From the NCBI GenBank assembly GCA_965644295.1, contig CBFFRP010000250.1, positions 1 to 25,344 on the forward strand: 25,344 nucleotides of DNA, in the 5' to 3' direction. Numbering within the stretch: the stretch's first letter is position 1; each line of letters opens with the position of its first letter. This document shows, in pieces, positions 1-25,344 of this stretch. Both the position numbers and the translations under genes were made by a program. The notes under the pieces were generated by a model. The model worked only from the letters and a program-made list of their open reading frames with translations, had not been told where the DNA came from and did no database searches. This stretch comes from Paraphysomonas bandaiensis (taxonomy: Eukaryota > Protista > Chrysophyceae).

Positions 1-3000
1 CAATGGCTTCGTCGGTGGTCATTGTCAACTGTAGTGTCGTGTCGTGTGGACACACTAATTATTCTCCTGCACTGTATAAGTGGCGACACACAAGGGAAGC
101 CTCTTTTCAGTTAGCCGAAAGAATCGACCTGATCAGGGTTCAGCTGTATCCGCCTCAAACATCGCACTTTCTGCATCACTTCTGGAAACTGTTCGATGCG
201 CTATATCATCTGTTCTGCCATCGTCGATTGACTTTGATGATCAGGATAGTTTGGTTTCGCTAGGTATTGACTCTTTAGGTGTGCTGCAGGTGCGTAACGA
301 GCTATCAAGGGAGTTTGGAGGAATTGATCTTCCGTCGGCTCTTGTCTTTGAATATCCTACTGTGGCGAGTGTCGCATCTTGCATTCAGCAGTTGCAGCTG
401 GGTTCGCAAAAGGGGTAGACGAAAATCCCGTGCAAACTCTCTGCTGCTGGAATTGCAACAACACAATAGGAAAGTTACATTTGATATGCCCAAGGAATAT
501 GAAGCGATGGCTTCTGCAACTCGTATGCAACAAGCGATGCTATTTCATTACATGTCAGACCCTTCTAGTGGGACATTCCTTGAAACGTTTTCATGGTACA
601 TCACTTCTGATGGTAGGATGAATCGCGTTAAGTTTGATGTTGCTGCGTTTCGTAACGCTTGGGTTGACACTATTATTGACCACGCCTCTCTGAGATCGTC
701 TTTTGATATGGAAGCATCCCCGCCAATAACTTGTGTGGAAGCCACATGTAATCGGCCTCAACAAGTCACAATATGAGGCTCAATATTCGTGGTTTGAATT
801 CTCATCTACAGTGTCTAATAGTAAGGATGGACCGTAAAATCAAAAATACAGGAGCATCGGCGATCAGGATGTGTGCATCCGGGAGATCCACTGTCGTTTA
901 AAGTCAGCTTGGTGAAATTGTCACAGAGTCAAACGGTAGAGTATGCACCTGATATTTTCTGTGCACCATGCCATAGTGGACGGTTGGTCGATACGCAATT
1001 TATTGCACTGTTTACGTGATAACTACACGCGATACGCCAGTGTACAAGGCCACTACCTCGATGAGCAATGTCAGCTGTTTCCATCATTCGAAGCCTATGC
1101 AATGTATGAAAATAGCTTGTTGGAATTTCCGGAAGCCCACGATCTGGATCTTCTTAAAGCGTTTTGGAGTAATAGTTTGAGAGGATGGAAGATACCGAAT
1201 GTATTTAATAATATGCTCCCTCTTATGATTAATACTTGATGAAGAAGTTATGCGCTGCGCTAAGTACTTGTCATCAGATTTGCTTATTGTATGCAGAAAA
1301 GCAGCTAGTCTAGTTGGTGTGACATTGGCATCTTTTTTCATGCATCATGGTCAGTGGTGTACAACTCATGGTTACGTTAGGACTTGGACACACCAGAGTT
1401 TTATACGGCTGCACTGCCACAGGACGATCGGCCGCGGTACAAGACCTAGGAGAAATAATTGGTCCTGTCATAAATACGTTCCCTGTTCGGCTGACGTGGG
1501 ACAATGATGAAAATGTGAAGTCATTCTTGGCAAGAGTTCACAAGCACCTACTGGATTGCATAAAGCATGAGAATCTTCCCTTTAACAGAGATTCAAAGGT
1601 TGACATCTACCCCTGTCAAAGGGTCTTTGTTTCCTGTAGTTTTTGATTATCAGCATGAGCAGCTTTTCAATTGTGAATTTGTGTGATCTTTATATTAAAA
1701 ATGACTCCTTGATCGATCGCATTGGTTGCCCACTTTCAGTCAGAACTGTTGTTGGGAGTGAGTCTGCGCAATTGATTGCAACTTCAGAATGTTTGAATAT
1801 AACTCGTCCTTCCTTGAAGGATTACTTTGTTCAGTGGAAATGTCGCTTCAGGCTCTTGCGTCCTGCATCGATTCAGATGATGGCCTTAAAACGACAATGC
1901 AGGACTTTGAGCGAAAAGTTTCTAGAAAGCTCATACCACTCCCCATTACCCACGACTTCCCAATCCTATACTTCCTGAGCGTCAGGTTGCAACGGGAGTC
2001 AAACATTGTACCCGGGTTGAATTGGTAAAGGCAATTGCTGGGACTCAGTTCACAAGGGCCTTATCTAATTGTTCTTATTATAAGTTGGAGTCCTTGAATT
2101 CGTGTATGTTGAGCGCCTTTTTAGTTGCAGTTAAACGCCACAGTAGCTCATCACTCTTCTCCATCGATTTTCTGATAAGGCATCATCCAGCCAGCACATT
2201 ACATTTAGTTTACACTCGAAGCTATCATGGTATGAGATGACCTTATTGGATGTCTTAAAACAGAGCGAGCTGGAGGAGCAACTTGCTATGAATAGGATAA
2301 ATATTTCTTCTGTGAAAAATCGTCAGAGATGTGTAATGTGGTATTCTGTGAATGGTCCAGTAACAACGAAGGTAATTACTTAGCCGGGGGCGTAAAAAAG
2401 GAAAATGACCCTGTTCTGTTTCCACACTGCTGGTGGAAGCTCTGCTCAATTCACGGGTTGGAAAGACGTGCTAACCAACATGGCCCAATGCAATGACGCA
2501 ACGAGTGTGTGGAATGTTGAGCTCGTTAGTGTCGATCTCCCTGGTCACGGCACGAAACTTTCTGAACCTGTTATGAAGGACTTATCTAGTATTGTAAACC
2601 ACTTGTTGATTTCATTGCGAGAAATGCTGTGGACAGAATCGGGGCATCCTAATCATTTTTGTTTCCTCGGATATTCGATGGGTGCTCTTGTAGCTCTATG
2701 CGAGCTTGCTCTTGCCGTGACAAAAAGCTTACGGTACTGGTCCTGACCACATATTTGCACTTCGCTGAAGCAGCCCCGATGCACATCAAATCTCGATGCG
2801 GACCCCTTTGGCTGACACAGGGTCTCTGATGAAGGATCTCACCAACCAGGGCTGGTATTCTAAAGATTTTCTTGACCTTTCTACTTCTGATGCTGAATTT
2901 TTCCTTACCACTGCACGGGCTGATTTACTGGTAGGAGAGCACTTATGTGTGGGATCCGGACAGCGCACAACAGTTGCATTGTCCTGTGACTGTTTTCTAT

Positions 3001-6000
3001 GGATGCGATGACACCACCCTAGTAGGACGAAGTGATATTGGTGAAGAAGCTGTATGGCATTGGAAAAAAGCGTCTGCTGGAGCATTCAACGTTCACGCCG
3101 TCCCTGGTGGGCATATGATCATGGACAGCGAAAGTAATAAAAAGTTCGTACTTGAGGAAGTATATTGTTCTATCAACCGTATTGACATCCATCCTGATGA
3201 AATATTTGCTAATTACTTAGTTTGCAATGTCATTCATGCGTCCCAGGATAAATTCACCTGCAAGCTATCTTTTTCTGATAAACTGGATACAACTGTAATT
3301 GAGAGCATTCACAAGACGTACTCTGCGATGCTTGATTTGGTTTGCTCGGATGACCCCCAGGTGTGGAAGAACCCTGTGTCCGAAGCAATCGCTCCCCTCC
3401 ATCGCCTGTGCCTGTTTCACCTCCATGTCCTCTCAGCAAAGATCTCATGTGACGAAGGGTTTATTCGTGTGTATGTAAGACTGCGACGAATTGTGATATT
3501 ATGCCTGCGGTTGTAAGTTACGATGAGTTGGGTGAGAGAGAGATGTCGTTATGTACTCTGATATGCAGCGATATGCTACGATAGTAGCTAGTGAATTGCT
3601 CAATAAAGTGCCTCTCTTTGATTGAGTCAAGCGTGGTGGCAGTTTTGATGGATATGGTTGGGGAACAAGTTGTAGCTGTACTGGGTGTGCATATGGCTCA
3701 ATGTGTCTATCTTCCTATGGATAGTCGTTCGTGGCCGGAGCATCGTGTTACTCAGGTTCTGGACCTTAGCAAGTGCGCAGCAAGCCGTGACTCAGTCTCG
3801 TGTATCATGTCGTCCTGTCAGTGGCTTAACGAAATTAGCATTCCAGTCATGGATGTGAACTCAGTAATAACTCGGCATGGGAAGCACCACACACCTGATG
3901 TAGATTCAGTTCTGTGTCGTAGAAAACGAGTAGATCCAACTGACCTTGCGTATCTAATTTACACCTCCGGTTCTACGGGTGTACCGAAGGGTGTGTGCTG
4001 CCACCACCAGGGAGCTGTGGAATACTATTGCGGATTTGAATGAGCGATTTTCGGTGACATCGTCAGATAGGGTGTTTGGCTTGTCATCATTAAGTTTCTG
4101 ATTTGTCGGTGTATGATATATTCGGCTTGCTCTCCGCCGGCGGCACGGTCGTGCTCCTCTGTCTAATTGTATACACCCCCCAGATCCTGAAGAATGGATA
4201 GGGATTCTGACAGCAGAGATGATTACAATATGGGACACTGTTCCAGCTTTCATGGAGTTGATGGTGACACACTGGTGAGTATTCAAATACCAGCTCCCTG
4301 CTAGCTTGCGTCTGGTATATGAGTGGAGACTGGATTCCGTTGTCTCTTCCAACGTATACGTGCCGTGTCTGCATGTCCCGATATTCGCATCATTAGTATG
4401 GGCGGGGCGACAGAAGCGGCAATATGGTCGAATATGTTTGAGCTGAGTAAAGAGGGATCTGGAATACCACCGGGGTGGTCCAGTATACCGTATGGTCGAC
4501 CACTCCGCAACCAAACAATGTATGTTCTCAATGAGGAACTGGACAACTGTGAATCATGGGTGACTGGTGGTATCTATATTGGTGGGGCAGGTGTAGCAAA
4601 AGGATATTATAATAACCCCGAGAGGACTCGATACCAGTTCATTGTGCACCCGCGAACTGGTGAGTCGCTGTTTCGCATTGGCGATTTGGGCCGTGTGCGT
4701 CCCTGTGGAAATATAGAGATATTGGGGCGTGAGGATTCACAGGTCAAGGTGTAAATGGGTTCCGCATAGAGCTAGGTGAGATCGAGCGTGTGCTGATGAA
4801 GGGATGTTGAGTATCATCGGCTGCGTTGACAGTGCATCATAATGCCCTGGGTGTGCGTATCTCGTATTAAATGATTATGGTGATGATTATTCCGCCCCAC
4901 ATGACGACATTATTGTAAGTCTTCGTGGTCTGTGTAAGGATTCATTAACCGACTATATGATTCCGCGGTATTTTATGTGTTTGGATGAACTTCCCCTCAG
5001 TTCAAACGGAAAAGTGGAGAGAAGTCGTTTGCCGACAATCACTGATGCGGAGACTTGCTATGACGATAGTATTGCGGACGTCGATTCTGAAGCATATTTC
5101 TCCCGCAATCCATTGGCAAGAGCATTACGCAATGTATGGGCAGAAATTTTGCATTGATTTTGTCTCTATACTTCCGGTTTCTAATTTCTTTTCCTTGGTG
5201 GGGACTCCTTATACCAATGCAAGTAGTGTCGCATGCTCGAAAGAGAGGAATCGTTGTCACAGTACCTCAGATATTCAACAATCCTACTATCAAGTCGCTT
5301 GTTGGTGTTGCCACGTCGGCAGCGTCATCTGGTCCCACTGTTCTGGGGACGAGTAGTGATAAGTCAAGCGGTAAACCTATTTTTGAGATAAAACCTGGAA
5401 AGCATAGTATGCTCAACGCTTATCCACTTATCGGTATCAATAAGGCTCACTTTGTCGGTCTACACACATCTTCTTATTCCCAGAAAGGCATTGCGCCCCA
5501 GATTTATTTCGAATGGGTTATGGGTGCGGAGGATGGGGGCTCTGATCCTGGACCTGGTAGATGTGCATACACTCGAGGAAGCTGTTACCCTTTTCGTGGG
5601 AAGGCATCCCCATTTCCGATCCTATGTGCTTCCAAGTGGACAAATGATGATGGATTAATTTTTGTCCAAAGTATAAGGTGTCCACATGTTGCACCGTGGA
5701 CTGGAGATGCTGCTGCTGCGGAGGCTAGTGCTCTAGAAACGCGGAGAGCTGACATGACTGCCAATGGGCCGAATGTGTACAAATGGCCGCTCTTTGATTT
5801 TCGTGTCACGCATATTGGCCCCACCACGTCTGTTATCCACGTCACAGTTTCATTATTCCTAATGGTCGCAATGGGAGATCTCATGTTCCGCCAGGAACTG
5901 TCAACCATATACAGAGCAGCTCTGTCTTGTGTGAGACAGGAAAAGCTGGGCGCGCTCACGGCGGCAAAGCTATCGTAAGAAGGAATTACCAGCTCCTTCA

Positions 6001-9000
6001 GAGGCTAATGTTCGCTGATTACTCCCACGCCATTGAGGAGTCCTTTACCCCTCTCAACAGAGTACATGCGTGCAAAAGAATTTTGGCTTGGGGAGATTGT
6101 CTACGCCTCCCTTCGGGGCCTGATTTGCCTTCTCTTTTCAGTGATAGCACCTAACTCAATTGTCTGACTCTGGAAAGTTTTGTAATTGGCACAGGTGGCT
6201 GTCAGTGGATGAATGGAATAACGCGGAAAGCTAATTGTGCCGCTCATTCAGTAACCATCCCTGCAATGTTGCTTGCTGTCTATTCGCTAACTATTGCCCA
6301 TTGGTCAAGGACAAAAAAGGTTTTTGCTAAATATTTTACAGTGTCTGAGACACCAGGTGCACCCCGATGTGAATAAGACTGTTGGCAACTGTAGTTCGAC
6401 CATACTGTGTGACATTGATATGACCCGAAAGAGCACAGACGAACCATTGTCTTTTCTTGTGGCCATCCAACGTGTTGCCAAAGAACTCTCTCAGAATCTA
6501 GAGCATGCATGCATGAGTGGCGTAGAGGTTATGCAAGAGCTAAATAGAGTTCAGGGTAAAACGTTTCAGGCGGTAGCCCCATTCATTTTCACAACTCCGA
6601 TTGGCGTCGAACAGGGAAATCAGCAAGTGTCGTCAAGAAATTGGATGTTCAAAGAGAGATTCTTCTCTGAAAGAGTACCTCATACGGCCTGTGTCAATGC
6701 AATTAAATCAGACCCCGCCGGTACAGCATGTGCTTCCATGGATATAGTAGAGGGAACTTTTCCAGATGAAGTAGTTCATGGGATGCACAAGACGTACTCT
6801 GCGATGCTTGATTTGGTTTGCTCGGATGACCCCCAGGTGTGGAAGAACCCTGTGTCCGAAGCAATCGCTCCCCCTCCATCACCTGTGCCTGTTTCACCTC
6901 CATGTCCTCTCAGCAAAGATCTCATGCACGAAGGGTTTATTCGTGTATGTAAGACTGCGACGAATTGTGATATTATGCCTGCGGTTGTAAGTTACGATGA
7001 GTTGGGTGAGAGAGATGTCGTTATGTACTCTGATATGCAGCGATATGCTACGATAGTAGCTAGTGAATTGCTCAATAAAGTGCCTTCTTTGATTGAGTCA
7101 AGCGTGGTGGCAGTTTTGATGGATAAGGGTTGGGAACAAGTTGTAGCTGTACTGGGTGTGCATATGGCTCAATGTGTCTATCTTCCTATGGATAGTCGTT
7201 CGTGGCCGGAGCATCGTGTTACTCAGGTTCTGGACCTTAGCAAGTGCGCAGCAGTTTTGACTCAGTCTCGTGTACTGTCGTCCTGTCAGTGGCTTAACGA
7301 AATTAGCATTCCAGTCATGGATGTGAACTCAGTAATAACTCGGCATGGGAAGCACCACACACCTGATGTAGATTCAGTTCTGTGTCGTAGAAAACGAGTA
7401 GATCCAACTGACCTTGCGTATCTAATTTACACCTCCGGTTCTACGGGTGTACCGAAGGGTGTGTGCTGCCACCACCAGGGAGCTGTGAATACTATTGCGG
7501 ATTTGAATGAGCGATTTTCGGTGACATCGTCAGATAGGGTGTTTGGCTTGTCATCATTAAGTTTCGATTTGTCGGTGTATGATATATTCGGCTTGCTCTC
7601 CGCCGGCGGCACGGTCGTGCTCCCTTCGTCTAATTGTATACACCCCCCAGATCCTGAAGAATGGATAGGGATTCTGACAGCAGAGATGATTACAATATGG
7701 GACACTGTTCCAGCTTTCATGGAGTTGATGGTGACACACTGTGAGTATTCAAATACTCAGCTCCCTGCTAGCTTGCGTCTGGTATATATGAGTGGAGACT
7801 GGATTCCGTTGTCTCTTCCAAATCGTATACGTGCCGTGTCTGCATGTCCCGATATTCGCATCATTAGTATGGGCGGGGCGACAGAAGCGGCAATATGGTC
7901 GAATATGTTTGAGCTGAGTAAAGAGGGATCTGGAATACCACCGGGGTGGTCCAGCATACCGTATGGTCGACCACTCCGCAACCAAACAATGTATGTTCTC
8001 AATGAGGAACTGGACAACTGTGAATCATGGGTGACTGGTGGTATCTATATTGGTGGGGCAGGTGTAGCAAAAGGATATTATAATAACCCCGAGAGGACTC
8101 GATACCAGTTCATTGTGCACCCGCGAACTGGCGAGTCGCTGTTTCGCACTGGCGATTTGGGCCGTGTGCGTCCCTGTGGAAATATAGAGATATTGGGGCG
8201 TGAGGATTCACAGGTCAAGGTAAATGGGTTCCGCATAGAGCTAGGTGAGATCGAGCGTGTGCTGATGAAGGACAAGCGAGTATCATCGGCTGCGTTGACA
8301 GTGCATCATAATGCCCTGTGTGCGTATCTCGTATTGAGTGACATGAATGGATCTGTAGATATAGAGGGTAGCAGCGATTATAGTGATGCTAGTCATGATG
8401 AGGTGTTTCAGAATTTGCGAGAGTTATGTCAAGATACACTTACTGACTATATGATTCCACGCCATTTTGTTGTATTAGATGAGATACCACTCAGTGCCAA
8501 CGGAAAGGTAGAACGAAGTCGACTTCCTCTTCCAGATGCAGTGTCCTCTGCATTTTTATCATCATCCATCCTTGATTCTAAAAAAGTTGATCCTTCGTCG
8601 AGATTAGAGGCTGCCATTGTGGAATCGTTTGCTGCTGTGTTGCAAATGGAAGAATCTCAAATATGCTGCCAAAGTGACTCGTTTTTCGCCCTAGGGGGGA
8701 ATTCTGTTTCGGCAATTCAGTTGTTATTCCGGATACGGAGTGATAGTGGAGAGTCTATTAGTGTTCAGGAGCTATTCGCTGCGCCCACTGTATGTGGTAT
8801 TGCAGCAACCATCTCTGCTAGAAGCGCGAAGACATCTCAAAATGGCGCGCAGGTCATAGAAAGTGATGGTTACGAGATCATTTGCCTGCAGGCAGGGTCT
8901 TCTGACGAAGTTCCTCTTCTTCTCTTTAATCCTGCAGGCGCAACTGGACTCTGGTAAGTTTGATAGTGGAAAATACCATATTGCTCTAAAGTGTATTCAC

Positions 9001-9792
9001 AGTTACTCTGACTTGTCCGAGCATCTAGATGGGAAGTATCCCGTCTACTGTCTCGATGACGGGGCGATTCTGAAGAATGTTGAGCGTAATGAATCCAGTA
9101 TTGATGCAGTGGCCGAAAAATGCCTACCTCTCGTTGTCAAATTTGCAAGTGCATACGGGTGTGTTTTATCAGGTAGAAATTCGCCCGATAGTGCAGTGAA
9201 AAAGGTAGTTCTAGGCGGATGGTCGTATGGTGGGGTCGTGGCTACAGTTGTGGCTGAAAAACTCTCCAGCACACCCACTCTCACGCGTTACAATGTGGAC
9301 GACGCGTGTTCTTTGGAAATAGCGGGGATAGTACTTTTTGATGCTCCTCTACGGAATGGTTCTTCAAATCTGAATGATATGCAAAGTGCAGACGAAAATG
9401 CTACTGCTGATGATGTGAGGTCTTGGATAAACCAATTCCATGGGCAAAGTGAGGAACTTTCTACTGAGAAAACGGTTGCCTCACATTTTTCCTACTGCAC
9501 ATCACTCTTGCGAAGGTTTTATGAACGCCAAAAGCGTGAGCGTCCCCTGTTATCGTGTCCTGTGCTTGATATTAGAGCTTCGCAATCGACATATAACTGT
9601 AGTGTTGAAGATGTGGAGGAAGTTTCATCCGGCGTTATCAGCACACACAAAACTGCAGGCAGTCACTTTACCATGTTATTTGGAAAAAACACTGCAGGGG
9701 TTGCTAAACTGGTTAAAAAATTCAATCGATTCGTGGAGAAATGTATTATAATCGATGGAACGCTCGTATCAGAGGTATTTTTTTCGTGTTGA
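1..9792 (+). CDS. Hybrid polyketide synthase / nonribosomal peptide synthetase, 5'-partial (ACP-C-Cy remnant/TE-A-PCP-Cy-A-PCP-TE); many apparent frameshifts in 1-~6300; one intron at 8954-9002
   Basis: Collinear domain motifs across the fragmented ORFs: GIDSL, HHAIVDG, GYSMG...GGH, YTSGSTGVPKG (x2), GGDSL, Cy-like motifs, FRTGDLGR, NGKVERSRLP (x2), GGNS, GWSYG...GSH. ORF 6294..8957 splices in frame to ORF 8863..9792. That the whole span is one gene is inferred. Confidence 0.85.
170..390 (+). other. PKS-type acyl carrier protein domain
   Basis: LVSLGIDSLGVLQVRNELSREFGGIDLPSALVFEYPTVASVA: GxDSL with the Ser at 272-274, plus the type I PKS ACP-typical LPxxLVFxYPT helix-III motif. Confidence 0.85.
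490..1900 (+). other. NRPS condensation domain with intact active-site motif (frameshifted in this assembly)
   Basis: ATRMQQAMLFHY (C1), FRNAW...HASLRSSF (C2), HHAIVDG at 964-984 (C3), YGCTATGR...IGPVINTFPVR (C5), HENLPF. Confidence 0.85.
2400..3180 (+). other. Internal thioesterase domain of type II (GrsT/RifR-like) appearance
   Basis: LFCFHTAGGS, VDLPGHG, FLGYSMGALVA (Ser 2675-2677), RADL, CPVTVFYGCDD, VPGGH (His 3112-3114). ORF 2947..3516 runs in frame from the TE C-terminus into the sequence preceding the first A domain. Confidence 0.85.
3310..4868 (+). repeat. Direct repeat copy 1 (~1.56 kb), near-identical to 6786-8335
   Basis: Starts cacaagacgtactctgcgatg and ends tgcgtatctcgtatt in both copies; differences are mostly 1-2 nt indels plus a few substitutions. 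Confidence 0.95.
3440..5035 (+). other. Adenylation domain 1, cysteine-type family (frameshifted copy)
   Basis: LAYLIYTSGSTGVPKGV, SMGGATEAAIWS, IPYGRPL, GGIYIGGAGVAKGY, GDLGR, LGREDSQVK, PLSSNGKVER. Near-identical at DNA level to A domain 2 over most of its length. Confidence 0.9.
5105..5310 (+). other. Peptidyl carrier protein (PCP) domain of module 1
   Basis: LRNVWAEIL...NFFSL, ggtggggactcctta (GGDSL) at ~5197-5211, then MQVVSHARKRGIVVTVPQIFNNPTIKSL; reading it requires small indel corrections. Confidence 0.85.
5415..6830 (+). other. Heterocyclization (Cy)-family domain, atypical
   Basis: YPLIGINKAHFVG, LEEAVTLFVGRHPHFRSYVLPSGQ, WPLFDFRVT, FADYSHA, LPSGPDLP, RFLLNILQCLRHQVHPDVNKTVGNCSS, LEHACMSGVEVMQEL and PFIFTT align in order with Cy-domain consensus blocks. 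There is no HHxxxDG. Confidence 0.8.
6786..8335 (+). repeat. Direct repeat copy 2 (1.55 kb), near-identical to 3310-4868
   Basis: Same boundaries as copy 1; this copy keeps an open reading frame. Confidence 0.95.
6915..8530 (+). other. Adenylation domain 2, cysteine-type family (intact frame)
   Basis: Core motifs present: YTSGSTGVPKG, SFDLSVYDIFG, SGDWIP, SMGGATEAAIWS, FRTGDLGR, GREDSQVKVNGFRIELGEIE, DYMIP, NGKVER. SGDWIP and GGATEAxIWS typify Cys-activating A domains of Cy modules (PchE/HMWP2/EpoB type). Confidence 0.95.
8590..8820 (+). other. PCP domain of the terminal module
   Basis: DSFFALGGNSVSAIQL (Ser 8703-8705) ... ISVQELFAAPTV. Confidence 0.9.
8900..9760 (+). other. Terminal type I thioesterase domain
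   Basis: After splicing: LLLFNPAGATGLCYSDLSEHL; GGWSYGG (Ser 9223-9225); LFDAP; GSHFTML. Confidence 0.9.
8954..9002 (+). other. Spliceosomal intron (49 nt) in the PKS-NRPS thioesterase
   Basis: GTAAGT...TTCACAG; removal joins ORF 6294..8957 to ORF 8863..9792 in frame and restores a TE N-terminal motif (PAGATGLCY). Confidence 0.9.
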
Positions 9793-10237
9793 CAAATTTC
9801 TCCATCATATGACACCTCTAATAGAGCATTCTACAATCAATATGTGTTTTGACTTTTCGGCGTCTTGTTGCTTTTGCACTCAGCATGGAATATCATGTGG
9901 TTTCACACATTATCATTCCATCGTGCTTTGTGTTAAACACAACGAATACGTTTTCTATCAGTAATAAATATATATATCATTAACGATAGATACTGGCTTG
10001 TTATTTCTAGCTGATACCTTTCGATTTGTACTATATATTGGTTGGATTTATTTCGAGTAAGATTTAAGTGTATTTGAGAAGTACGATATGAATAGAAAAT
10101 TAGTACAATTGTCTACAAGAATACTGTATATAATATATTCCTTCCACTCATAGAAATATATGTATGACGCCAAAAAAATTAATTAGATTATATGATACAA
10201 TAGTATGTATCGTAATATTTGTTGTATACTTCAACTG

Positions 10238-11752
10238 TCACATAACAGTACATCCATCCTCTCGACGTTGTGCTCTTTCTAGCAACGGAACAATATCTCT
10301 GGCGTGTAAGTAATTCGAGCTGTCGGCAAATTTTTTGTGAAGATCGACATAGAACTTGCTGCGAGGGTTGTTGTAAAAGTATATATCATACTCCTTCGTG
10401 GTATGGATTCTACCCAGTAATTCATCAAGTGTGTACTTGGAGAACGGAAGGTCTTCATACATGGCATTGATATCGTCTGGGTTAAGAGATGCAACAAGAT
10501 GACTAACAAGCCAAAAACCCCTCGTGTAAGGAAAAGTTGGACCTTCGAATCTTTACAAGATACAATAAGTTCAAATATATATGGGCCTGAAGCAGACTAC
10601 CTTAAGACGCGCTCCTTCTCTTCTTCATAGGACGCAATTTCATTAGTAAAACTTAGGGGATCAACTCCGCGCATCTACAAAAAGAAACTCATAAATTGCA
10701 ATATACCCCTACGACTAGTTCACCTTTAGTACGACATCTCCTTCGTCCTCTTCCAGAAGCGCTTTACGGCCTACATCTCTCATCCAATCGCAACCCGAAC
10801 TTTGTGCCCCAACACACGATATGAAGGTCAGCGGTGTGTGGGAGCTGTCACTACGCTCCCAAACAAAAGATCGTAGTTTCTCTAGAGAGGCATCAGTTGG
10901 AAGTGTTGCAGCTAGAACATAGTGGGCAGTTGGCTCATGCAGGTGTTGCGTGTGCCCTATACTTTCTTGTAGGGCAGTTAATACCGGGCAAGAAGTACTG
11001 AGAAGCCCTCCTTCTCGCTCTACTGCTCTAAAAGCGGACGCTATAGTCGAATGAGCTTCTCTCATAAACTCACTTGGAGGGCGCCCTCGGGGGGAAAGGG
11101 TCGCCACTCGAGGACACTGCATAAATCGGATAGATATGCTCCGCACTGGTATAAAAGCCAGTAAGTCTACAAATATATGAAGCTTGTTCTGCGTCTCCCT
11201 CCAGCGGGACATGGGAGCTTCTTCATCAGATTCGGAGCCTGAACTATTGTCGCCGTGCTCTCTCTGATGACCAGTGGCAAGAGTATTCCTATCGTAAGAC
11301 ATCACATTGGTACAAAGTGATACATGAAACTCTTACTCAACGTCATCGGTCATAGACGCATTGTCCCCAATGATAAAATTCAAGTGGTAGTTTCTTAGAG
11401 CGAGCAGCTTATCGAGCAGCCCTATGGGTATATTATACTGCTCAAAGTACTGACATATCTCTTCAAATAGATGCATCCGCTCATGAGGGACCCCTGAGAC
11501 AAACTCCCTGCAGTACTCGGGTGATCTCATGGTCCGTCGAGCGGCTGTAACGCTCTCTGCAAGCCTGCATTCCATATTGATCCCTGTGTCCCTCTCTATC
11601 GCTATACTCGCATGCTCCGCCTCATCTATGCTAGATACTATAGCCAGACGATTCGACTCATCGTACTGGTAGTACTTCTCCAACAACATACCAGATGTAT
11701 GCTCTCGTCGCTCATGCAGAGCTCCGTCTTTAAATATATATCTCCTCGGCAT
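10238..11752 (-). CDS. vWA-like domain protein with degenerate MIDAS and C-terminal CaaX (CTVM); exons 11752-11337, 11288-10724, 10674-10601, 10550-10238
   Basis: Three GT-AG introns (11336-11289, 10723-10675, 10600-10551; 48-50 nt) join the ORFs in frame. LNFIIGDNASM...SRWRE resembles a vWA first strand with DxSxS, followed by alternating strand/helix segments. The gene model is firmer than the product call. Confidence 0.7.
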
Positions 11753-13099
11753 TATGAGTTCCTTGTGGCTCTATATATACATACATACATACACAGTGCT
11801 GTGCTGTCGATGTACACTGTCTTCAAAGTCATCTGCAGTTGAAATTGGCTTACCCTCCCGAAGTTGAAGACTCTTCATCATTATGATTTTCTCCACGTTA
11901 CAACCAATTATATGCTAGCTATCATATTTGATTTGCTGGAGTGGGATGTAGTGTTGTTCTTCAACATTGAGAACTGCAGACTCGTAGGAAGTCATATGCT
12001 GCTGCTGGTGTTTCCCTGCGAACAGAATTTCATCCTCTCTGGATTGGTCAAGCCGAAATCTTGAAAAGCAATTGTAGCTACAAATGCTGCTGTATTTGGT
12101 GTATAGACGGTATTCTTATATTCACTGCAATACAATACAGGAATCGATTAATATCCAATGATTTCCGAACTCTTGATGATGATTAGTCTAGTTGTATGTT
12201 GTGGTATATGATGAAGAGTGCATGGAACGATGGGATGTGGTAACTCCTTCTGTGATGTATGGATTTACTTACTGTGTGATTGTGAGGCACGCAACTGGAT
12301 CATCATTCTTTTATCAGCTTGATCTCGCTCTGTGTTGGTTGTTGTCGCTTACACTTTCATCTGTTCAGCGCTTTACATTCCAAGGAAGCTGGTTTATTAC
12401 ATAGGGGTATAACCACACAGAAGATACCAAAAGATCAAATCAATTAGTCACAAAGACTCGATAAAGCTGTATTCCAGTATACAGAAACTACACTAAGTTA
12501 TGATGACTTTGTGTTAGGTTTTTTGGTGTGTCTGAAGGCATTTAGTGCCACAGAAGCTTTAAATAACCCTCTGGTTTCGTATCAGTTATAATTTTTCAGT
12601 TCGGCAATGAGGTTTCAACCTGAGTTCCTCTACAGTAAATTTTCTAGGGTTAAACGCCTCTTAAATTATCGTTGACGATGGATGAAGATGTAACAATTAT
12701 TGGTTCCGTCAATCATCCGAAGATCGATGACTTCCTCTGCTTTGAACTGAGATCCCGTATATAGGACCCTTTTCACTCGACACGCAACCTCATAGTAAGC
12801 CTTTGTTGCTTAACATTAGCATTGATTCAGTTGTCATGATGTGTGTGTAACGCTGGGTATATTGTGTGCACCACATAACCATTACATTGAGCACTAGTTC
12901 CTGCTGTGATTGCTCTATATACAGCGGTTTACTTTTCTGACACCAAAGATATATATTATTATTACAGATAACTACTCATGTTGTGGACGTTATATGTGCC
13001 AGTATTTTTCTGTATCATATATATACAGTTGTATGGTTCATACGTGATGCACAGAAACACTGCGCACTGTGCCGTGTCCTTTTCGGTATACTGATTTTT

Positions 13100-15720
13100 A
13101 GAATTGGACTTTATACTAAAGTTAACTTTGCTCCGCACGTAAACCTTAAACTTTAATTGTTGCACTCAACGTACTTTCAAGGAAGAATTATAATTATTAA
13201 TCTCAACACTTCAAAAAATATACATATATGAATGAAGATATAATCTTAATAATAGTAAGAAGAATGCTGTGATTCTTGGAATGCAAAAAGTGCCTAACAA
13301 TGACGATCGTTATAATAACGTTATTGAATCTTCAACATATACTATTATTAATTCAGTTTGTGATATATTTCATTGAACACTATAATTCACATATACAATT
13401 GTATAATCGAGATTGCCATGATATTAGACTATTACCTATAAAGAATGTGAATGCAGTGGTTGACCGTCGATTGAGGTGGCATCGCATCCAGCCGCTATCA
13501 CAGTATCCTGATAATGTTATGTTGGATCCAGAATATGTCAGTCCTTATTTGGCAATACAGGCAGTTAGATTAGGCAAATCAGAGAATCGTCAAAAGTATT
13601 GACAGCGAATGCAATTTCTGGTCGAGTACACACACCTAAGTGCATCAAAGAGCGAATGAGTTCATTGTAGGGGAAATTCTGAACATAGCTTTGATATGAG
13701 TATGATAGATTGTTGAATTCATGTAGATCATAGTTAAATCAGAGCAACATAGGTGTGGACATGGAATCGCAGTCAGACATGTTAAATTTATCCAGCAGTT
13801 TGATAACATATATTGCTCCTGGCTGAACGTCGTGGTATTTTTGTCGAAATCCTGATTGATGGAAATGCCTAAGTAGTAGTCCAGGGGTCCGAGTTCCGTG
13901 ATTTAGAACTTTTTTTTTGATAAGGCTTTTGAATTCTTGGATGTCGATATCTGACTCCGACGCGATAATGTGGTCATCGACATACATGGCAATTAGCATA
14001 ATTCTGCCGTCGATATGTTTTTTAAATATGCACGAGTCAGATACTAATCTAGTATACCCATGTCTAACATGAAATTAGTACAACATTTATACCAGTTTAG
14101 ACCGGCTTGTTTAGATCCGTAGATACTTTTTAATAATCTGAGTACCTTGATATCGGGGATGTTCATATATGGAGGGGGATACATATGTAGATTTCTTCCT
14201 CAAGGTTGGCATTGATGTAAGCGATGGTAAAATCGATCTCTGGTGGAGTTTGAGATTCACAATAGTTGCAAGGGCGATGATGGTCCGTCGTGATGTCGCC
14301 TTCTTGGCTACAGGGATGTACGTTTCATTGTAATCGATGCCAGGTATTTGGGTGAATCCCTGAGCAACCAGTTGAGCTTTGAATTTTATATCATATATAT
14401 CGCTTTCTTTTAATTTTAAAATTAAGCTTTCCTTTTATGGCTCACGCTCCCGATGGTACCTCTAGTATCCTTTCTTTTGGAGAGTGGAAAATTTTTATTG
14501 ATCGCGTCGATGCAATTTTGAATCGAGAATTGATACGTTTGTGAGCAACTGCTCTATATTCCGTGTATTCCTCGGTATATCGTTAGACGTCGTCTGCAGC
14601 GTGTATAGGTCGTCGAGTTGAATAATACTGCCGCTATTATCCTAGTCCACGGTACGCTACAATTAGTCCTTTTTTCACTTTTATCTGTGTTGTTACGCAG
14701 GTTAGGCCATCATCCGGGCCAATATGTAAGAGTCCTATGAGGTATTTGAAACTCTCAATCGTCCTGGAGGTCTCGTTTTCTATGAATATTTTCGTCAATT
14801 TCTGTAAATATTTTTTATCTGGTGATGGAATACATTCATTGAAGGAAACGTGTCCTGATAATACAAAACCTCTTAGTGCCGGGACAAAGGTTATGTAACC
14901 CGGTCCATCCTCACGATAACCCATAAAATAGCCGGATAAACGATGTCTGTCCCAATTGTTCCTTCGAAGGCTGGAATCAATATTTACAAAACATTTACAT
15001 CCCCAATTCCTGCGTAGCTCAGATCGGGGATTTCATTTTCAACGAATTGTAACATAAATCCCTTTGCAGTTGAGCATGACAATGTGTTTTTCAGATATAT
15101 GTAGATGTGTTTCACAGCATCATGTTCCCAGAAATTGGCCGCAAGGCCAGAATCCATTAGACTGATGAGTGCTCGTTGTTTAATCGTTCTCCAGGTCGTT
15201 CCTGAAATGGATTATCGTCGGGGGTATAGGGAGAATTAACAGTCTACCTATAAGGAGGTAATCCAATGCTTTACTGGATATTAATTCTGGCTACAGTCGG
15301 CGTGATAATGTTTACCTTTACTCCGCAGGTATGTAATGATACTCCGGATAGAATCGATGACAAAGTCTTCATCTCTCGTTTTTACGTAAAAATTTCATTT
15401 GACGGGAGGCTTTTCATTGCTTTTATATGGGACTTTCCGCTCACACAAACCACCAGGGAGAGAGGCAGCACTAATCTCTACCTTCGTAAGCTTGACACCT
15501 AGAGATTGTATTGCTTTCTGTGTAAACCCGATGGAAGCGTGTGCGAGTCTTTTGTATTCTAAGACCCTCAACAAAGTCGGACTCGCACCTTTTCGTGGTG
15601 TTCTGGGGGATAAGTACCGGAGATATTTCTCCGGGAAACTAACGTGAGCCGCAAACATAGTCAGCAGATATATGTTCTGCCCACTCATAGCCAAATGCTT
15701 GTGTGGTACAAGGGACACTA
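13100..15720 (-). mobile_element. Degenerate Ty1/copia LTR-retrotransposon pol remnant (GAG-pre-integrase, integrase, RT, RNase H)
   Basis: Minus-strand order: YKRLAHAS (pre-integrase), WRTIKQRA...SGLAANFW (integrase), WGCKCFV...[45 protein letters not shown] (RT), GYCDSGW...RRSTT, ISWQSR (RNase H). Integrase before RT indicates copia. Many stops and frameshifts; boundaries approximate; LTRs not found. Confidence 0.92.
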
Positions 15721-16360: not shown

Positions 16361-17282
16361 TCATGCGTCAGTTGTGGGGTCATCTCCCATTTCCATATAC
16401 ATAACACCTGCAAACGTCGGAGAGAAACGCATCATCACGTCCCCATCACCGGTGGCAGCGCATCCACCTACTGAGCCATTCACATAGCATCCAGATCCTG
16501 CAATAGGGGAGTCACCCACACGACCTCGAACCTTGTGGTTGGCACCATTGGTTGTTGTTCCACAGGACATATGTCCGAACTCATCAATAGCCACAATCCC
16601 AATGGTGTCATGATTATCGTTGGTGGCCCATGGAATGTGTACCCTTGTTTTGTGTTCCCGTTCCAACAGCAATGAAGACGAAGGGTGAGGGTAGGGCCCG
16701 CAGCTGTCTTCACATCCCTCAAGATTCTGATAAAAATTAGGTTGGCATCCACTTTCTCGCCACTGCGCAAACTCTTGCAACGATTCACTTGTCGCTGTGT
16801 TTTGCGCTTGAGCTCCAATCATATGTGCAAATTCTTCTGCGCCAGAACCCACTAAAAGTGTATGGGTAGTATACTCCATCACTGCACGGGCAATGCTGGC
16901 TGCATTTCTGTATCCTGACAAGAACGCTACTGATCCGACATCCATCTAAAATATATTAACTATGAGCATACAATCCATTCGACATAGTTATACTCACACT
17001 CTGTCCATCCATGATCATAGCATCTAACGTAACCCCTGCATGCGTGTCAGGGTGATTGCCGTATCCTACACTTCCATCACACTGATTTACTTCGCATGCA
17101 GTGCATCCAATTTCAACAGCAGTCAGGCAATCTGCCCCGTTACTTAGAGCATCGTATGCAGCTTCTGTCGCCACTGTGAACGGCCCGGCCCATGTGTTGA
17201 CTACTATCTTACACTCACATGTCGCAGCTATACAAAGTAACAGAGCTATTGAACGGCGATGGAACAGAGTGATATGGCTCAT
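16361..17282 (-). pseudogene. AGA: N(4)-(beta-N-acetylglucosaminyl)-L-asparaginase (glycosylasparaginase), C-terminally truncated; intron 16997-16946
   Basis: Signal peptide, VVNTW, CDGSVGYG..PD...TLDAMIMDG, CQPNF, autocleavage site NHDTIG, GRVGDSPIAGSG, ATGDGD. The 52-nt GTGAGT...TTTAG intron joins the two ORFs. Homology ends abruptly at GDDPTT. The family call is strong; pseudogene status is inferred. Confidence 0.85.
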
Positions 17283-17784: not shown

Positions 17785-18609
17785 ATGCTCTCTGTTTTAT
17801 CTATTGTTTCCCTGTTGTTGCTCAGCTCAGAGACAGTATCGTCTCAGTCCTCATCTGCATGCCCCTCATACAATGCAAGCAAAATAAAGTTGGTTACTTT
17901 CGATTGTTTTGCTGCGCTCATGGCATGGGAAGGTATAGTTCTTATTGGTGAACTGCTCGAGATAATGTCTTTTCTTTCAGATTCGATGTTCGCTTCAGTG
18001 GCTGAAGTATTGCCGTATTTGAGCACTAATGATGTGCACACTCTCGTCACGAAGTGGGAAAATGCTTATGGTGCCGCTACCAATTCTGTTTTCGAAGAAG
18101 GGGTCACGGGCGCATTTCCATTTAGTTGGCACATTTCGAATTCTCTAAAGGATATTATAAGGGATATGGGGTTAGACATCAGCCGTGATGAGTTTGATGC
18201 GTTGGTCAAGTGCTGGGGGAAACTTACTCCATGGGAAAATACTCAAGAGACACTTGAGATATTAGCCGATGCTAACTATACTATTGGGGCTCTATCTAAT
18301 GGTGATTATTATACACTGGCAACAGCAGTGTCGATATTTCATACCCCTGTGGAGTTCAGCCACATATTTTCCTCTGACTTCCCAGCGGGTGTATTTAAGC
18401 CCCAGCCTGCAATCTACGAACCAACGAAGCATATTGGGTTTGAAGTTGAGGAAATTCTTCACGTTGCTGGTGGTGGGAACGATGCATCTGGTGCTCGTGA
18501 TGCGGGGCTTTTCTCTGCGCTCTTACACAAGCCACCCAAAGACGGTAAAACGGAACCGTGTTTCGTCCTGAATGACATCACTGAGCTTCCCGCTGTACTG
18601 GGACTTTAA
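17785..18609 (+). CDS. HAD-superfamily hydrolase, haloacid dehalogenase type II-like, with N-terminal signal peptide; probable in-frame intron 17933-17980
   Basis: Motif I LVTFDCFAAL, II LSNGD, III FKPQPAIY, IV LHVAGGGNDASGA; hydrophobic leader MLSVLSIVSLLLLSSETVSS; 48-nt GTATAG...TTTCAG segment. Confidence 0.85.
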   Translation: MLSVLSIVSLLLLSSETVSSQSSSACPSYNASKIKLVTFDCFAALMAWEGIVLIGELLEIMSFLSDSMFASVAEVLPYLSTNDVHTLVTKWENAYGAATNSVFEEGVTGAFPFSWHISNSLKDIIRDMGLDISRDEFDALVKCWGKLTPWENTQETLEILADANYTIGALSNGDYYTLATAVSIFHTPVEFSHIFSSDFPAGVFKPQPAIYEPTKHIGFEVEEILHVAGGGNDASGARDAGLFSALLHKPPKDGKTEPCFVLNDITELPAVLGL

Positions 18610-24408: not shown

Positions 24409-25344
24409 CTATGCCACTGACATAGAGCGAACTCTTTCTCTTTCGTCGTTCTGTGCACTTGTGATACTGGACATACTTGCGACGGATATATTTCTATTGT
24501 ATGCCCCTTGATCTGCTGCAGACTCTTTGTCAGTATCACCGATACTGCATTCGTCATCTACGTAAGGCTTATGTGTACCTTCGGGTGAATCAAATTTACT
24601 CTTCATCTTCCACGCCACAGTGAAAAGTAATAAATTGATAGCCATCTACACAGGACACAATAAGGAAAACCAAGGCCATGATATTAAATCAGACGCTCAC
24701 CATGACCGCTGAGACGTATATAAGAACCGCCCAGCTGAATTGGGAGTATATGACTCCAGATAACAGACTGCCTGCTCCAGCTACCGTAAAGAGAATAAAA
24801 TCGTTGATAGCTTGCACATCAGCTGCTTCATGTGGCTACATACAGTACCAGGTAATCGACAATGAATCTTTTACGGTGGTCGAATCTTACCGCATAGCAT
24901 GTAGTCAACATGATAGTTCCCGCAGAAAAAGAAAGGTTCCAGGCAAACCCCAGTACCATCATACCTCCTAAATAGTTCCATAGGTCGTTTCCAAGAGCAA
25001 ATATGACAGACGACATGGCGAACATAACTGCTCCAAATACACATACGTTGAATGTACCGTAGTCTTGAATTAGCTTGCCGGTAAAGAAGCCAGGTAAGAA
25101 CATGGCCAAAAAATGAAGTTCCAGAACAAGACTGGTGGTGCGAAACGAGTAGTCGTCATCCATGGATATAGCGCAATTGCTCATAATCGCCACCATTACA
25201 GTGTGCGCAATTGTTGCAACAGTGCATGAGAGAATGAAGACAGGGTGTGACACGATCTCATACACCGACCGCCGCCGCAAGAGGGGATTCGCAGGAGATA
25301 ACGTTTCATCTTTCTTTGGAAAATTAACTGAGTAGAGGGTTAGC
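24409..25344 (-). CDS. Major facilitator superfamily transporter, 5'-partial; introns 24890-24836 and 24700-24646
   Basis: Successive TM helices; HFLAMFLPGFFTGKLIQDYG (MFS motif A-like), MMVLGFAWNLSFSAGTIMLT, VQAINDFILF. Two 55-nt GT-AG introns keep the frame, which is open to the window edge. Confidence 0.88.

Follow-up and report, generated by a model that had tools for sequence, protein, structure and literature searches.

The window analysed here is a stretch of 25,344 nucleotides from the chrysophyte Paraphysomonas bandaiensis, corresponding to contig CBFFRP010000250.1 (C250; positions 1 to 25,344, forward strand) of the eukaryotic assembly GCA_965644295.1, which comprises 62.5 Mb in 669 contigs. 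Positions 1-9792 of the plus strand are part of a single eukaryotic gene for a fused polyketide synthase (PKS) and nonribosomal peptide synthetase (NRPS). The domain order is KS-AT-ACP-C-[half Cy::TE]-A-PCP-Cy-A-PCP-TE (ketosynthase, acyltransferase, acyl carrier protein, condensation domain, half of a heterocyclization domain with a thioesterase, adenylation domain, peptidyl carrier protein, and so on). The NRPS and PKS pieces are spread across all three frames of the window. On a second contig of the same genome (C619, opposite strand), the whole region lies in one open frame of 3579 codons, the first 3300 residues of which contain, in this order, the C-terminal part of the KS, AT, ACP, a complete C domain (HHAIVDG), a thioesterase, A, PCP, Cy, and A; residue numbers given below refer to this intact protein. 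The second PCP and the terminal TE come next in the window according to Pfam. The thioesterase between the complete C domain and the first A domain is, as judged from alignments of the segments on either side of it, very probably inserted in a remnant of the C-terminal lobe (C-lobe) of a former Cy domain. The following features of the gene were delimited:

492-1878, plus strand: complete C domain of module 1; the HHxxxDG motif is intact (HHAIVDG at about 964-984), and the domain is broken by indels in the window.
1879-2404, plus strand: flank upstream of the embedded thioesterase (pre-TE flank), probable remnant of the first part of a Cy C-lobe; the recognisable core lies at about 1950-2175, the remainder is too diverged.
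2405-3183, plus strand: embedded type II-like thioesterase (residues 1441-1685), split over three frames in the window.
3184-3460, plus strand: flank downstream of the embedded thioesterase (post-TE flank), probably the final strands and the final helix of the Cy C-lobe together with the Cy-A linker; the sequence starting at 3307 is almost the same as that starting at 6783 in module 2.
3461-5060, plus strand: A domain of module 1 (Pfam AMP-binding in the intact allele; repeat alignment).
5373-6797, plus strand: full Cy domain of module 2, with which the flanks were compared; matches among PDB sequences are BmdB Cy (1.6e-30), EpoB Cy (1.5e-28), and the Cy domains of Irp2 and HMWP2.
6798-8953, plus strand: A domain and PCP of module 2, then the first residues of the terminal TE (Pfam AMP-binding 1.8e-64, PP-binding 7.9e-10).
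9003-9792, plus strand: terminal thioesterase of the GWSYG type (Pfam PF00975, 1.9e-6), not close kin of the embedded one.

The complete C domain of module 1 was recognised by the Pfam Condensation profile on pieces of the window and in the intact allele (residues 804-1189, E 2e-45). Its C-terminal end is YNSSFLEGLL (window 1798-1827, residue 1264). The first Cy-like residues follow at about 1288-1291, and the approximately 25 residues in between leave no room for the N-terminal lobe (N-lobe) of a Cy domain. A Cy N-lobe with its DxxxxD motif was not matched in any of the searches. The absence of the N-lobe, which the original prediction had put down to its loss, is thus borne out, and the lobe that hosts the thioesterase, with its catalytic N-lobe missing, is a vestige rather than an active host.

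The relationship of the two flanks to Cy domains became clear from profiles only, which were built from eight homologues. Single-sequence phmmer comparisons of the pre-TE flank with the homologues were barely positive, and a Smith-Waterman alignment of this flank with the Cy domain of module 2 was suggestive only (z 5.6; 2 of 300 shuffles scored as high). In hhalign, the pre-TE profile aligned to the gene family's Cy domain with scores of 44-49 (P 3e-6 to 1e-5), with or without the rows of this gene, over 67-73 columns at Cy columns of about 230-300, which is the start of the C-lobe. Column-shuffled profiles reached 15 at most. The upstream C domain scored 16-18, that is, no similarity of the pre-TE flank to this domain was detected by hhalign. 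When all PDB sequences were searched with the pre-TE profile (hmmsearch), the top matches were EpoB Cy (310-378, E 1.1e-5) and Irp2 Cy (225-292, E 3.7e-5), with FmoA3 and PchE ranking next; ordinary C domains appeared only above 0.1. The post-TE profile matched the C-terminal end of Cy domains in the same database (HMWP2 Cy 404-447 of 453, E 5.1e-5; also Irp2 409-452) and aligned in hhalign to the end of the Cy domain and the Cy-A linker with an E value of 3.7e-25. Pfam contained no family for the pre-TE flank and gave just a sub-threshold UPF0300 match for the post-TE piece.

For hhalign of the joined flanks, the thioesterase was cut out by a script. The excised sequence aligned collinearly, in one alignment, to columns 243-515 of the Cy profile, the C-lobe of the gene's own Cy domain, so that host segments stand in native order on both sides of the guest domain. 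The pre-TE profile has 149 positions and the post-TE segment about 65-70, together about 215-220 residues compared with about 228 in a Cy C-lobe (Irp2 225-452), which argues for an insertion rather than a replacement. The insertion point lies just after the strand equivalent to PVVFTS of Cy domains (PFIFTT in module 2) and before the equivalent of ACVNAI (LVCNVI here). In C-domain structures, this loop region normally extends in the direction of the N-lobe. The flanks of the thioesterase match both ends of the C-lobe of known Cy domains (EpoB Cy, Irp2/HMWP2 Cy, BmdB Cy2, PchE Cy) and not ordinary C domains. The half Cy described here differs from those domains in the absence of the whole N-lobe including DxxxxD, in the diverged middle of the lobe, and in the foreign domain inserted. 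On its sequence, the remnant cannot be a working cyclodehydratase. The original prediction had read the flanks as consecutive pieces of the Cy C-lobe, which is supported by the collinear and significant alignments. Of the three pairs of strings on which it had been based, QFTRALSNC... (from 2046) and LVCNVIHAS...IHKTY (3217-3321) are in the true frame. The third, PLPITHDFPIL (1936-1968), comes from a shifted frame, since the window lacks a T at 1931; the true peptide at this site is HTTPHYPRLPNPILPE, which still aligns to the Cy motif region.

The embedded thioesterase carries the motifs GYSMG (GxSxG, 2669-2683) and GGH (3103-3123), as had been noted originally. Its catalytic codons are Ser 2675-2677, Asp 3010-3012, and His 3112-3114 (Ser1531/Asp1640/His1674), and the triad is kept in seven out of seven homologues. 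Pfam PF00975 matched with 8.7e-9 on a piece of the window and 9.9e-20 in the intact allele. The assignment to the type II thioesterases (TEIIs), likewise part of the original prediction, holds by sequence, by fold, and in a tree. Among PDB sequences, RedJ, human TE2, and RifR ranked first (about 1e-16 to 1e-14; with the surfactin TEII, the range spans about 1e-16 to 1e-9), whereas the terminal Pik TE reached 0.05. In the AlphaFold model, the core of the thioesterase was predicted with a pLDDT of 85-94, and fold comparison of this model gave Z scores of 28.5 for RedJ, 27.6 for ClbQ, 26.4 for BorB, and 25.6 for YbtT, compared with about 18-21 for terminal-type TEs; YbtT is thus among the best structural matches. 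All top matches in Foldseek were TEIIs. A profile search of 1.84 billion proteins retrieved 12,824 matches, and the majority of the best 150 were proteins of about 250 amino acids, labelled as stand-alone by their length only. In a phylogenetic tree, the seven embedded thioesterases grouped as a single clade (SH-aLRT 98) surrounded by stand-alone TEs, with the terminal TEs of these synthases set apart (99). The embedded thioesterase is type II-like, and stand-alone editing TEs are nearer to it than TE domains of the terminal type (type I). An origin as a copy of the terminal TE was considered and rejected, since the tree separates the two. With the best-matching stand-alone TEIIs (RedJ, RifR, ClbQ, BorB, YbtT, SrfD/TEII, and human TE2), it shares the alpha/beta-hydrolase core, the Ser-Asp-His triad, and GxSxG. 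These are separate trans-acting proteins of about 250 amino acids, whereas the embedded thioesterase forms an internal domain of a megasynthase, where it is nested in the remnant of another domain and located in frame between C and A in the 3579-codon open reading frame (ORF) and likewise in the homologues.

The order C, pre-TE flank, TE, post-TE flank, and A was found in six homologous proteins (P0001, P0002, P0004, P0005, P0006, and P0007). P0001, taken from ENA, is 35% identical over the region. P0005 falls in the same cluster as KAK3241698.1 of the prasinophyte green alga Cymbomonas tetramitiformis. P0002 (a EukProt Trinity transcript) and P0007 (a Trinity transcript of the diplonemid Artemidia motanka) are each encoded by a single ORF. 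P0083 shows the same order up to the first residues of the thioesterase, where the protein is truncated; its cluster has a member of 3854 amino acids. The remaining holders of the unit are marine eukaryotes. In P0007 (residues 620-1420), the unit is preceded by two consecutive complete C-type domains (HHLITDG and HHLVMDG), which indicates that the conserved block consists of pre-TE flank, thioesterase, post-TE flank, and A domain and occurs in more than one module context. The half Cy::TE arrangement is a conserved unit in several protist lineages and not a private accident of this gene. Among the best 150 matches of the 1.84-billion-protein search, only homologues of eukaryotic type extend into the flanks; no search was aimed at bacterial counterparts. 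Sequence identity between this gene and its homologues is 11-25% in the pre-TE flank and 30-42% in the thioesterase. The low conservation of the pre-TE flank fits a putative structural remnant under weak constraint, and in this sense only does the word "decayed" in the original prediction apply.

Illumina-derived contigs of four public runs were aligned to positions 600-6500 of the window; the runs comprise a DNA run of this organism, a run that is probably RNA, and two metatranscriptomes of marine origin. Contigs from RNA libraries cross both junctions of the thioesterase without splice joints (1755-2649 and 2812-3347 in the metatranscriptome X16; 1640-2793 and 2804-3339 in X5, the probable RNA run). 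The single ORFs of P0002 and P0007 provide independent support for one reading frame. There is no sign of a gene boundary ahead of the thioesterase in these contigs, in the open frame of C619, or in the two single-ORF homologues, and the flanks are significantly Cy-like; both findings on which the original prediction could have failed thus turned out in its favour.

For the function of this arrangement, we propose that the vestigial Cy lobe would no longer be catalytic and would be kept because its last helix and the linker form the usual platform of the A domain. The same lobe would also position the thioesterase beside the carrier proteins of module 1. With its triad intact, the thioesterase would edit in cis by hydrolysis, freeing the adjacent ACP or PCP of acyl or aminoacyl groups that were primed or loaded in error. 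In bacterial thiazoline pathways, carrier editing is generally ascribed to stand-alone TEIIs, for example YbtT and PchC. A fusion of such a helper into the megasynthase would be expected once the pathway resides in an operon-less eukaryotic host. Recombination at the hinge between the lobes is one possibility for how a block of Cy C-lobe, A, and PCP came to be set behind a complete C domain. Editing is favoured because the thioesterase belongs to an editing family, because bacterial thiazoline pathways typically include a TEII, and because an operon-less eukaryote favours the fusion of helpers. On these grounds, the enzyme may well act as an in-cis editing hydrolase, an assignment that is tentative and falls a little short of probable. 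A point against it is that enzymes of the TEII family can also transfer or release chains (PMC8748450).

Given the same anatomy, the thioesterase might instead shuttle acyl or aminoacyl groups via its serine between carrier proteins, for example from the ACP to the first PCP. The analogy is LgnA of legonindolizidine biosynthesis, which translocates aminoacyl units between T domains through an acyl-enzyme intermediate (PMC8748450) and is also a TEII-family enzyme built into the logic of an NRPS line beyond housekeeping. LgnA is a free protein of 29 kDa, unlike the embedded thioesterase, and the two are likened here by TEII family, not by clade. The location between ACP and PCP1 and the conserved triad would suit such a role. 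However, the complete C domain with its intact HHxxxDG motif can join the ACP-bound chain to the PCP1-bound amino acid unaided, and a transferase cannot be told from a hydrolase by sequence, so that a shuttle appears unlikely. Also with this anatomy, a mid-line release enzyme may be envisaged: either the polyketide chain or the acyl-amino acid intermediate formed first would leave the line at this point, be it as a product or through a controlled shunt. Release of intermediates is known for some TEII-like enzymes, and RedJ, which matches best by structure, has a carrier-bound chain as its substrate in prodiginine synthesis; the line already possesses a separate terminal TE of another type. Since the two downstream modules and the terminal TE are conserved in the homologues and would be wasteful if chains left at module 1, we consider release quite unlikely.

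The anatomy itself has to be weighed against a reading in which there is no single interrupted lobe. The flanks would then be leftovers of two truncations or fusions, or the pre-TE flank a mere linker, and the thioesterase would simply have been fused between C and A. Several observations weigh against an interrupted Cy lobe. The middle third of the supposed lobe is not recognisable, and only about half of the pre-TE flank, which is poorly conserved, is recognisably Cy-like, with an hhalign probability of 76-88% and not above 95%. Structure prediction of this flank was poor: AlphaFold returned a mean pLDDT of 45 for the flank alone, and in the model of the whole unit, the thioesterase was well folded and the pre-TE flank remained below 50 for much of its length. 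The post-TE piece ahead of the last helix, when taken alone, aligned to the correct place only weakly above background (hhalign 18-20, P 0.013-0.024), and a Smith-Waterman alignment of this short piece with Cy was at background level (z 0.8). Part of the post-TE signal in this gene stems from a recent intragenic copy of module 2, although the sequences of other species and the bacterial Cy structures still back it. The tree of the thioesterases was a quick maximum-likelihood search with a midpoint root, and the contigs from RNA libraries may include DNA carry-over. Co-folding of the two flanks as separate chains gave a score of 0.18 (mark 0.34), which speaks neither for nor against a common fold, and the fold searches of the whole-unit model with Foldseek and VIA were filled by thioesterases and thus uninformative on the flanks. 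A fusion without a common host lobe would nevertheless have to account for flanks that, once the thioesterase is excised, are collinear with one Cy C-lobe without overlap or duplication and nearly add up to the length of one lobe, and for the same split in all seven homologues, whose thioesterases form one clade. The absence of an interrupted lobe is accordingly regarded as improbable.

The broken frames of the window are almost certainly errors of the long-read assembly and not a sign of gene decay. Positions 1-13105 are 98.2% identical to C619 with 141 gap positions, and between 1800 and 3400, 12 indels are accompanied by only seven substitutions. An excess of indels of 1-2 nucleotides is also present against the internal repeat copy. 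In the tract 3450-4807, for which the indels were itemised, none of the 12 listed indels was present in the DNA run or the probable RNA run at full depth (164-346x for the former); both metatranscriptomes likewise lacked 10 of them. Between 1800 and 3400, the gap counts of the Illumina contigs equal the differences to C619, with one gap each in the contigs 2812-3347 and 2804-3339 and none in 2943-3339. At every place compared, the contigs of the four runs were in agreement with C619. The thioesterase had originally been described as in frame with the segment leading into the A domain; this is correct after correction of the indels, as in the single frame of C619, and does not hold for the window itself, in which the 12 indels split the domain over three frames. 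Decay, where the word refers to disrupted frames, is therefore an artefact. A further contig, C367, also matches part of 1-13105, so that three overlapping versions of the locus (C250, C619, and C367) with differing indel loads exist in the assembly, C250 being the worst. C619 has a frame break of its own just upstream of a likely intron (8954-9002) and is thus not error-free. That the window copy is a genuine decaying paralogue of the intact C619 gene with real frameshifts, as the 141 gap positions with few substitutions and the three overlapping copies might suggest, is highly improbable and was rejected on the read evidence: the indels occur in no Illumina contig of the four runs, even at the depth of the same-organism DNA run (contigs can drop rare variants), the best public run contains just a share of 0.68 of the window's 31-mers, and indels far outnumbering substitutions are the signature of long-read consensus error, not of decay. 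Contig C250 is rich in indel errors, and apparent pseudogenes on it should not be trusted.

Taken together, an explanation that combines assembly-error frameshifts, the half Cy::TE anatomy, and a cis-editing thioesterase on a vestigial lobe appears on balance probable.

Further observations concern the remainder of the gene and its surroundings. The A domains of modules 1 and 2 share an almost identical tract of about 1.55 kb (3307-4874 and 6783-8341), window indels aside. It begins sharply within the last helix of the Cy-type lobe (IHKTY), both copies in C619 are 99.6% identical to the module-2 copy of the window, and the depth of the DNA run doubles over it. The repeat looks like the result of intragenic gene conversion. 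The Cy domain of module 2 contains MDAMGD (5859-5882) at the usual DxxxxD site and is still of the Cy family by sequence (BmdB Cy, 1.6e-30). Between the linker of the second PCP and the terminal TE, a likely intron of 49 nucleotides was identified (8954-9002, GTAAGT...CAG). Its removal joins ...FNPAGATGL to ...YSDLSEHL... in frame, which makes the terminal TE part of the same protein. Upstream of the region covered by the window, the KS is split on the reverse strand of C619 (about 2350-2530 of the reverse complement) between a frame of 604 codons and the 3579-codon frame, which overlap by about 180 nucleotides; this may be due either to another intron or to an indel error. Neighbouring ORFs in the window encode an Asparaginase_2 gene in two pieces (16361-17282, minus strand), a HAD-like hydrolase (17785-18609, plus strand), and a weak match to MFS transporters (24828-25280, minus strand). 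No obvious tailoring genes adjoining the synthase were found among the neighbouring ORFs of the window.

To our knowledge, the hosts of nested domains described in NRPSs are almost exclusively A domains. C domains reduced to truncated forms or remnants beside an A domain have been mentioned for several clusters, and we know of no such remnant reported with an inserted catalytic domain. The phrases "interrupted condensation domain," "embedded thioesterase," and "internal thioesterase domain" were not found in any paper by a full-text literature search. Interrupted A domains, in which a methyltransferase, ketoreductase, oxidase, or similar domain is embedded, are well described (PMC8341866). They resemble the present case in that one assembly-line domain is nested in another within a single polypeptide; they differ in that a tailoring domain is hosted by an A domain that still works, whereas here a vestigial Cy/C-type lobe hosts a thioesterase. 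It is conceivable, though speculative, that the vestige of a Cy C-lobe took on a new role as a docking and scaffold module, by which a proofreading thioesterase built into the synthase is presented to the carrier proteins. Such a lobe would constitute a new class of interrupted C-type domain, which would have a single origin and would have spread, by vertical descent or by transfer between species, to marine protists of no fewer than three distant lineages, represented by this genome, by a prasinophyte green alga, and by a diplonemid.

The survival of a C-type lobe without its catalytic half, hosting a thioesterase, would mean that the lobes of C and Cy domains can have separate evolutionary fates, which is the idea underlying exchange-unit engineering with cuts between the lobes. 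The arrangement may also offer a natural design for in-cis proofreading in engineered assembly lines. As a unit common to distant marine protists, it is also relevant to the question of how thiazoline pathways of the bacterial style came to be fused into single genes and to spread in eukaryotes.

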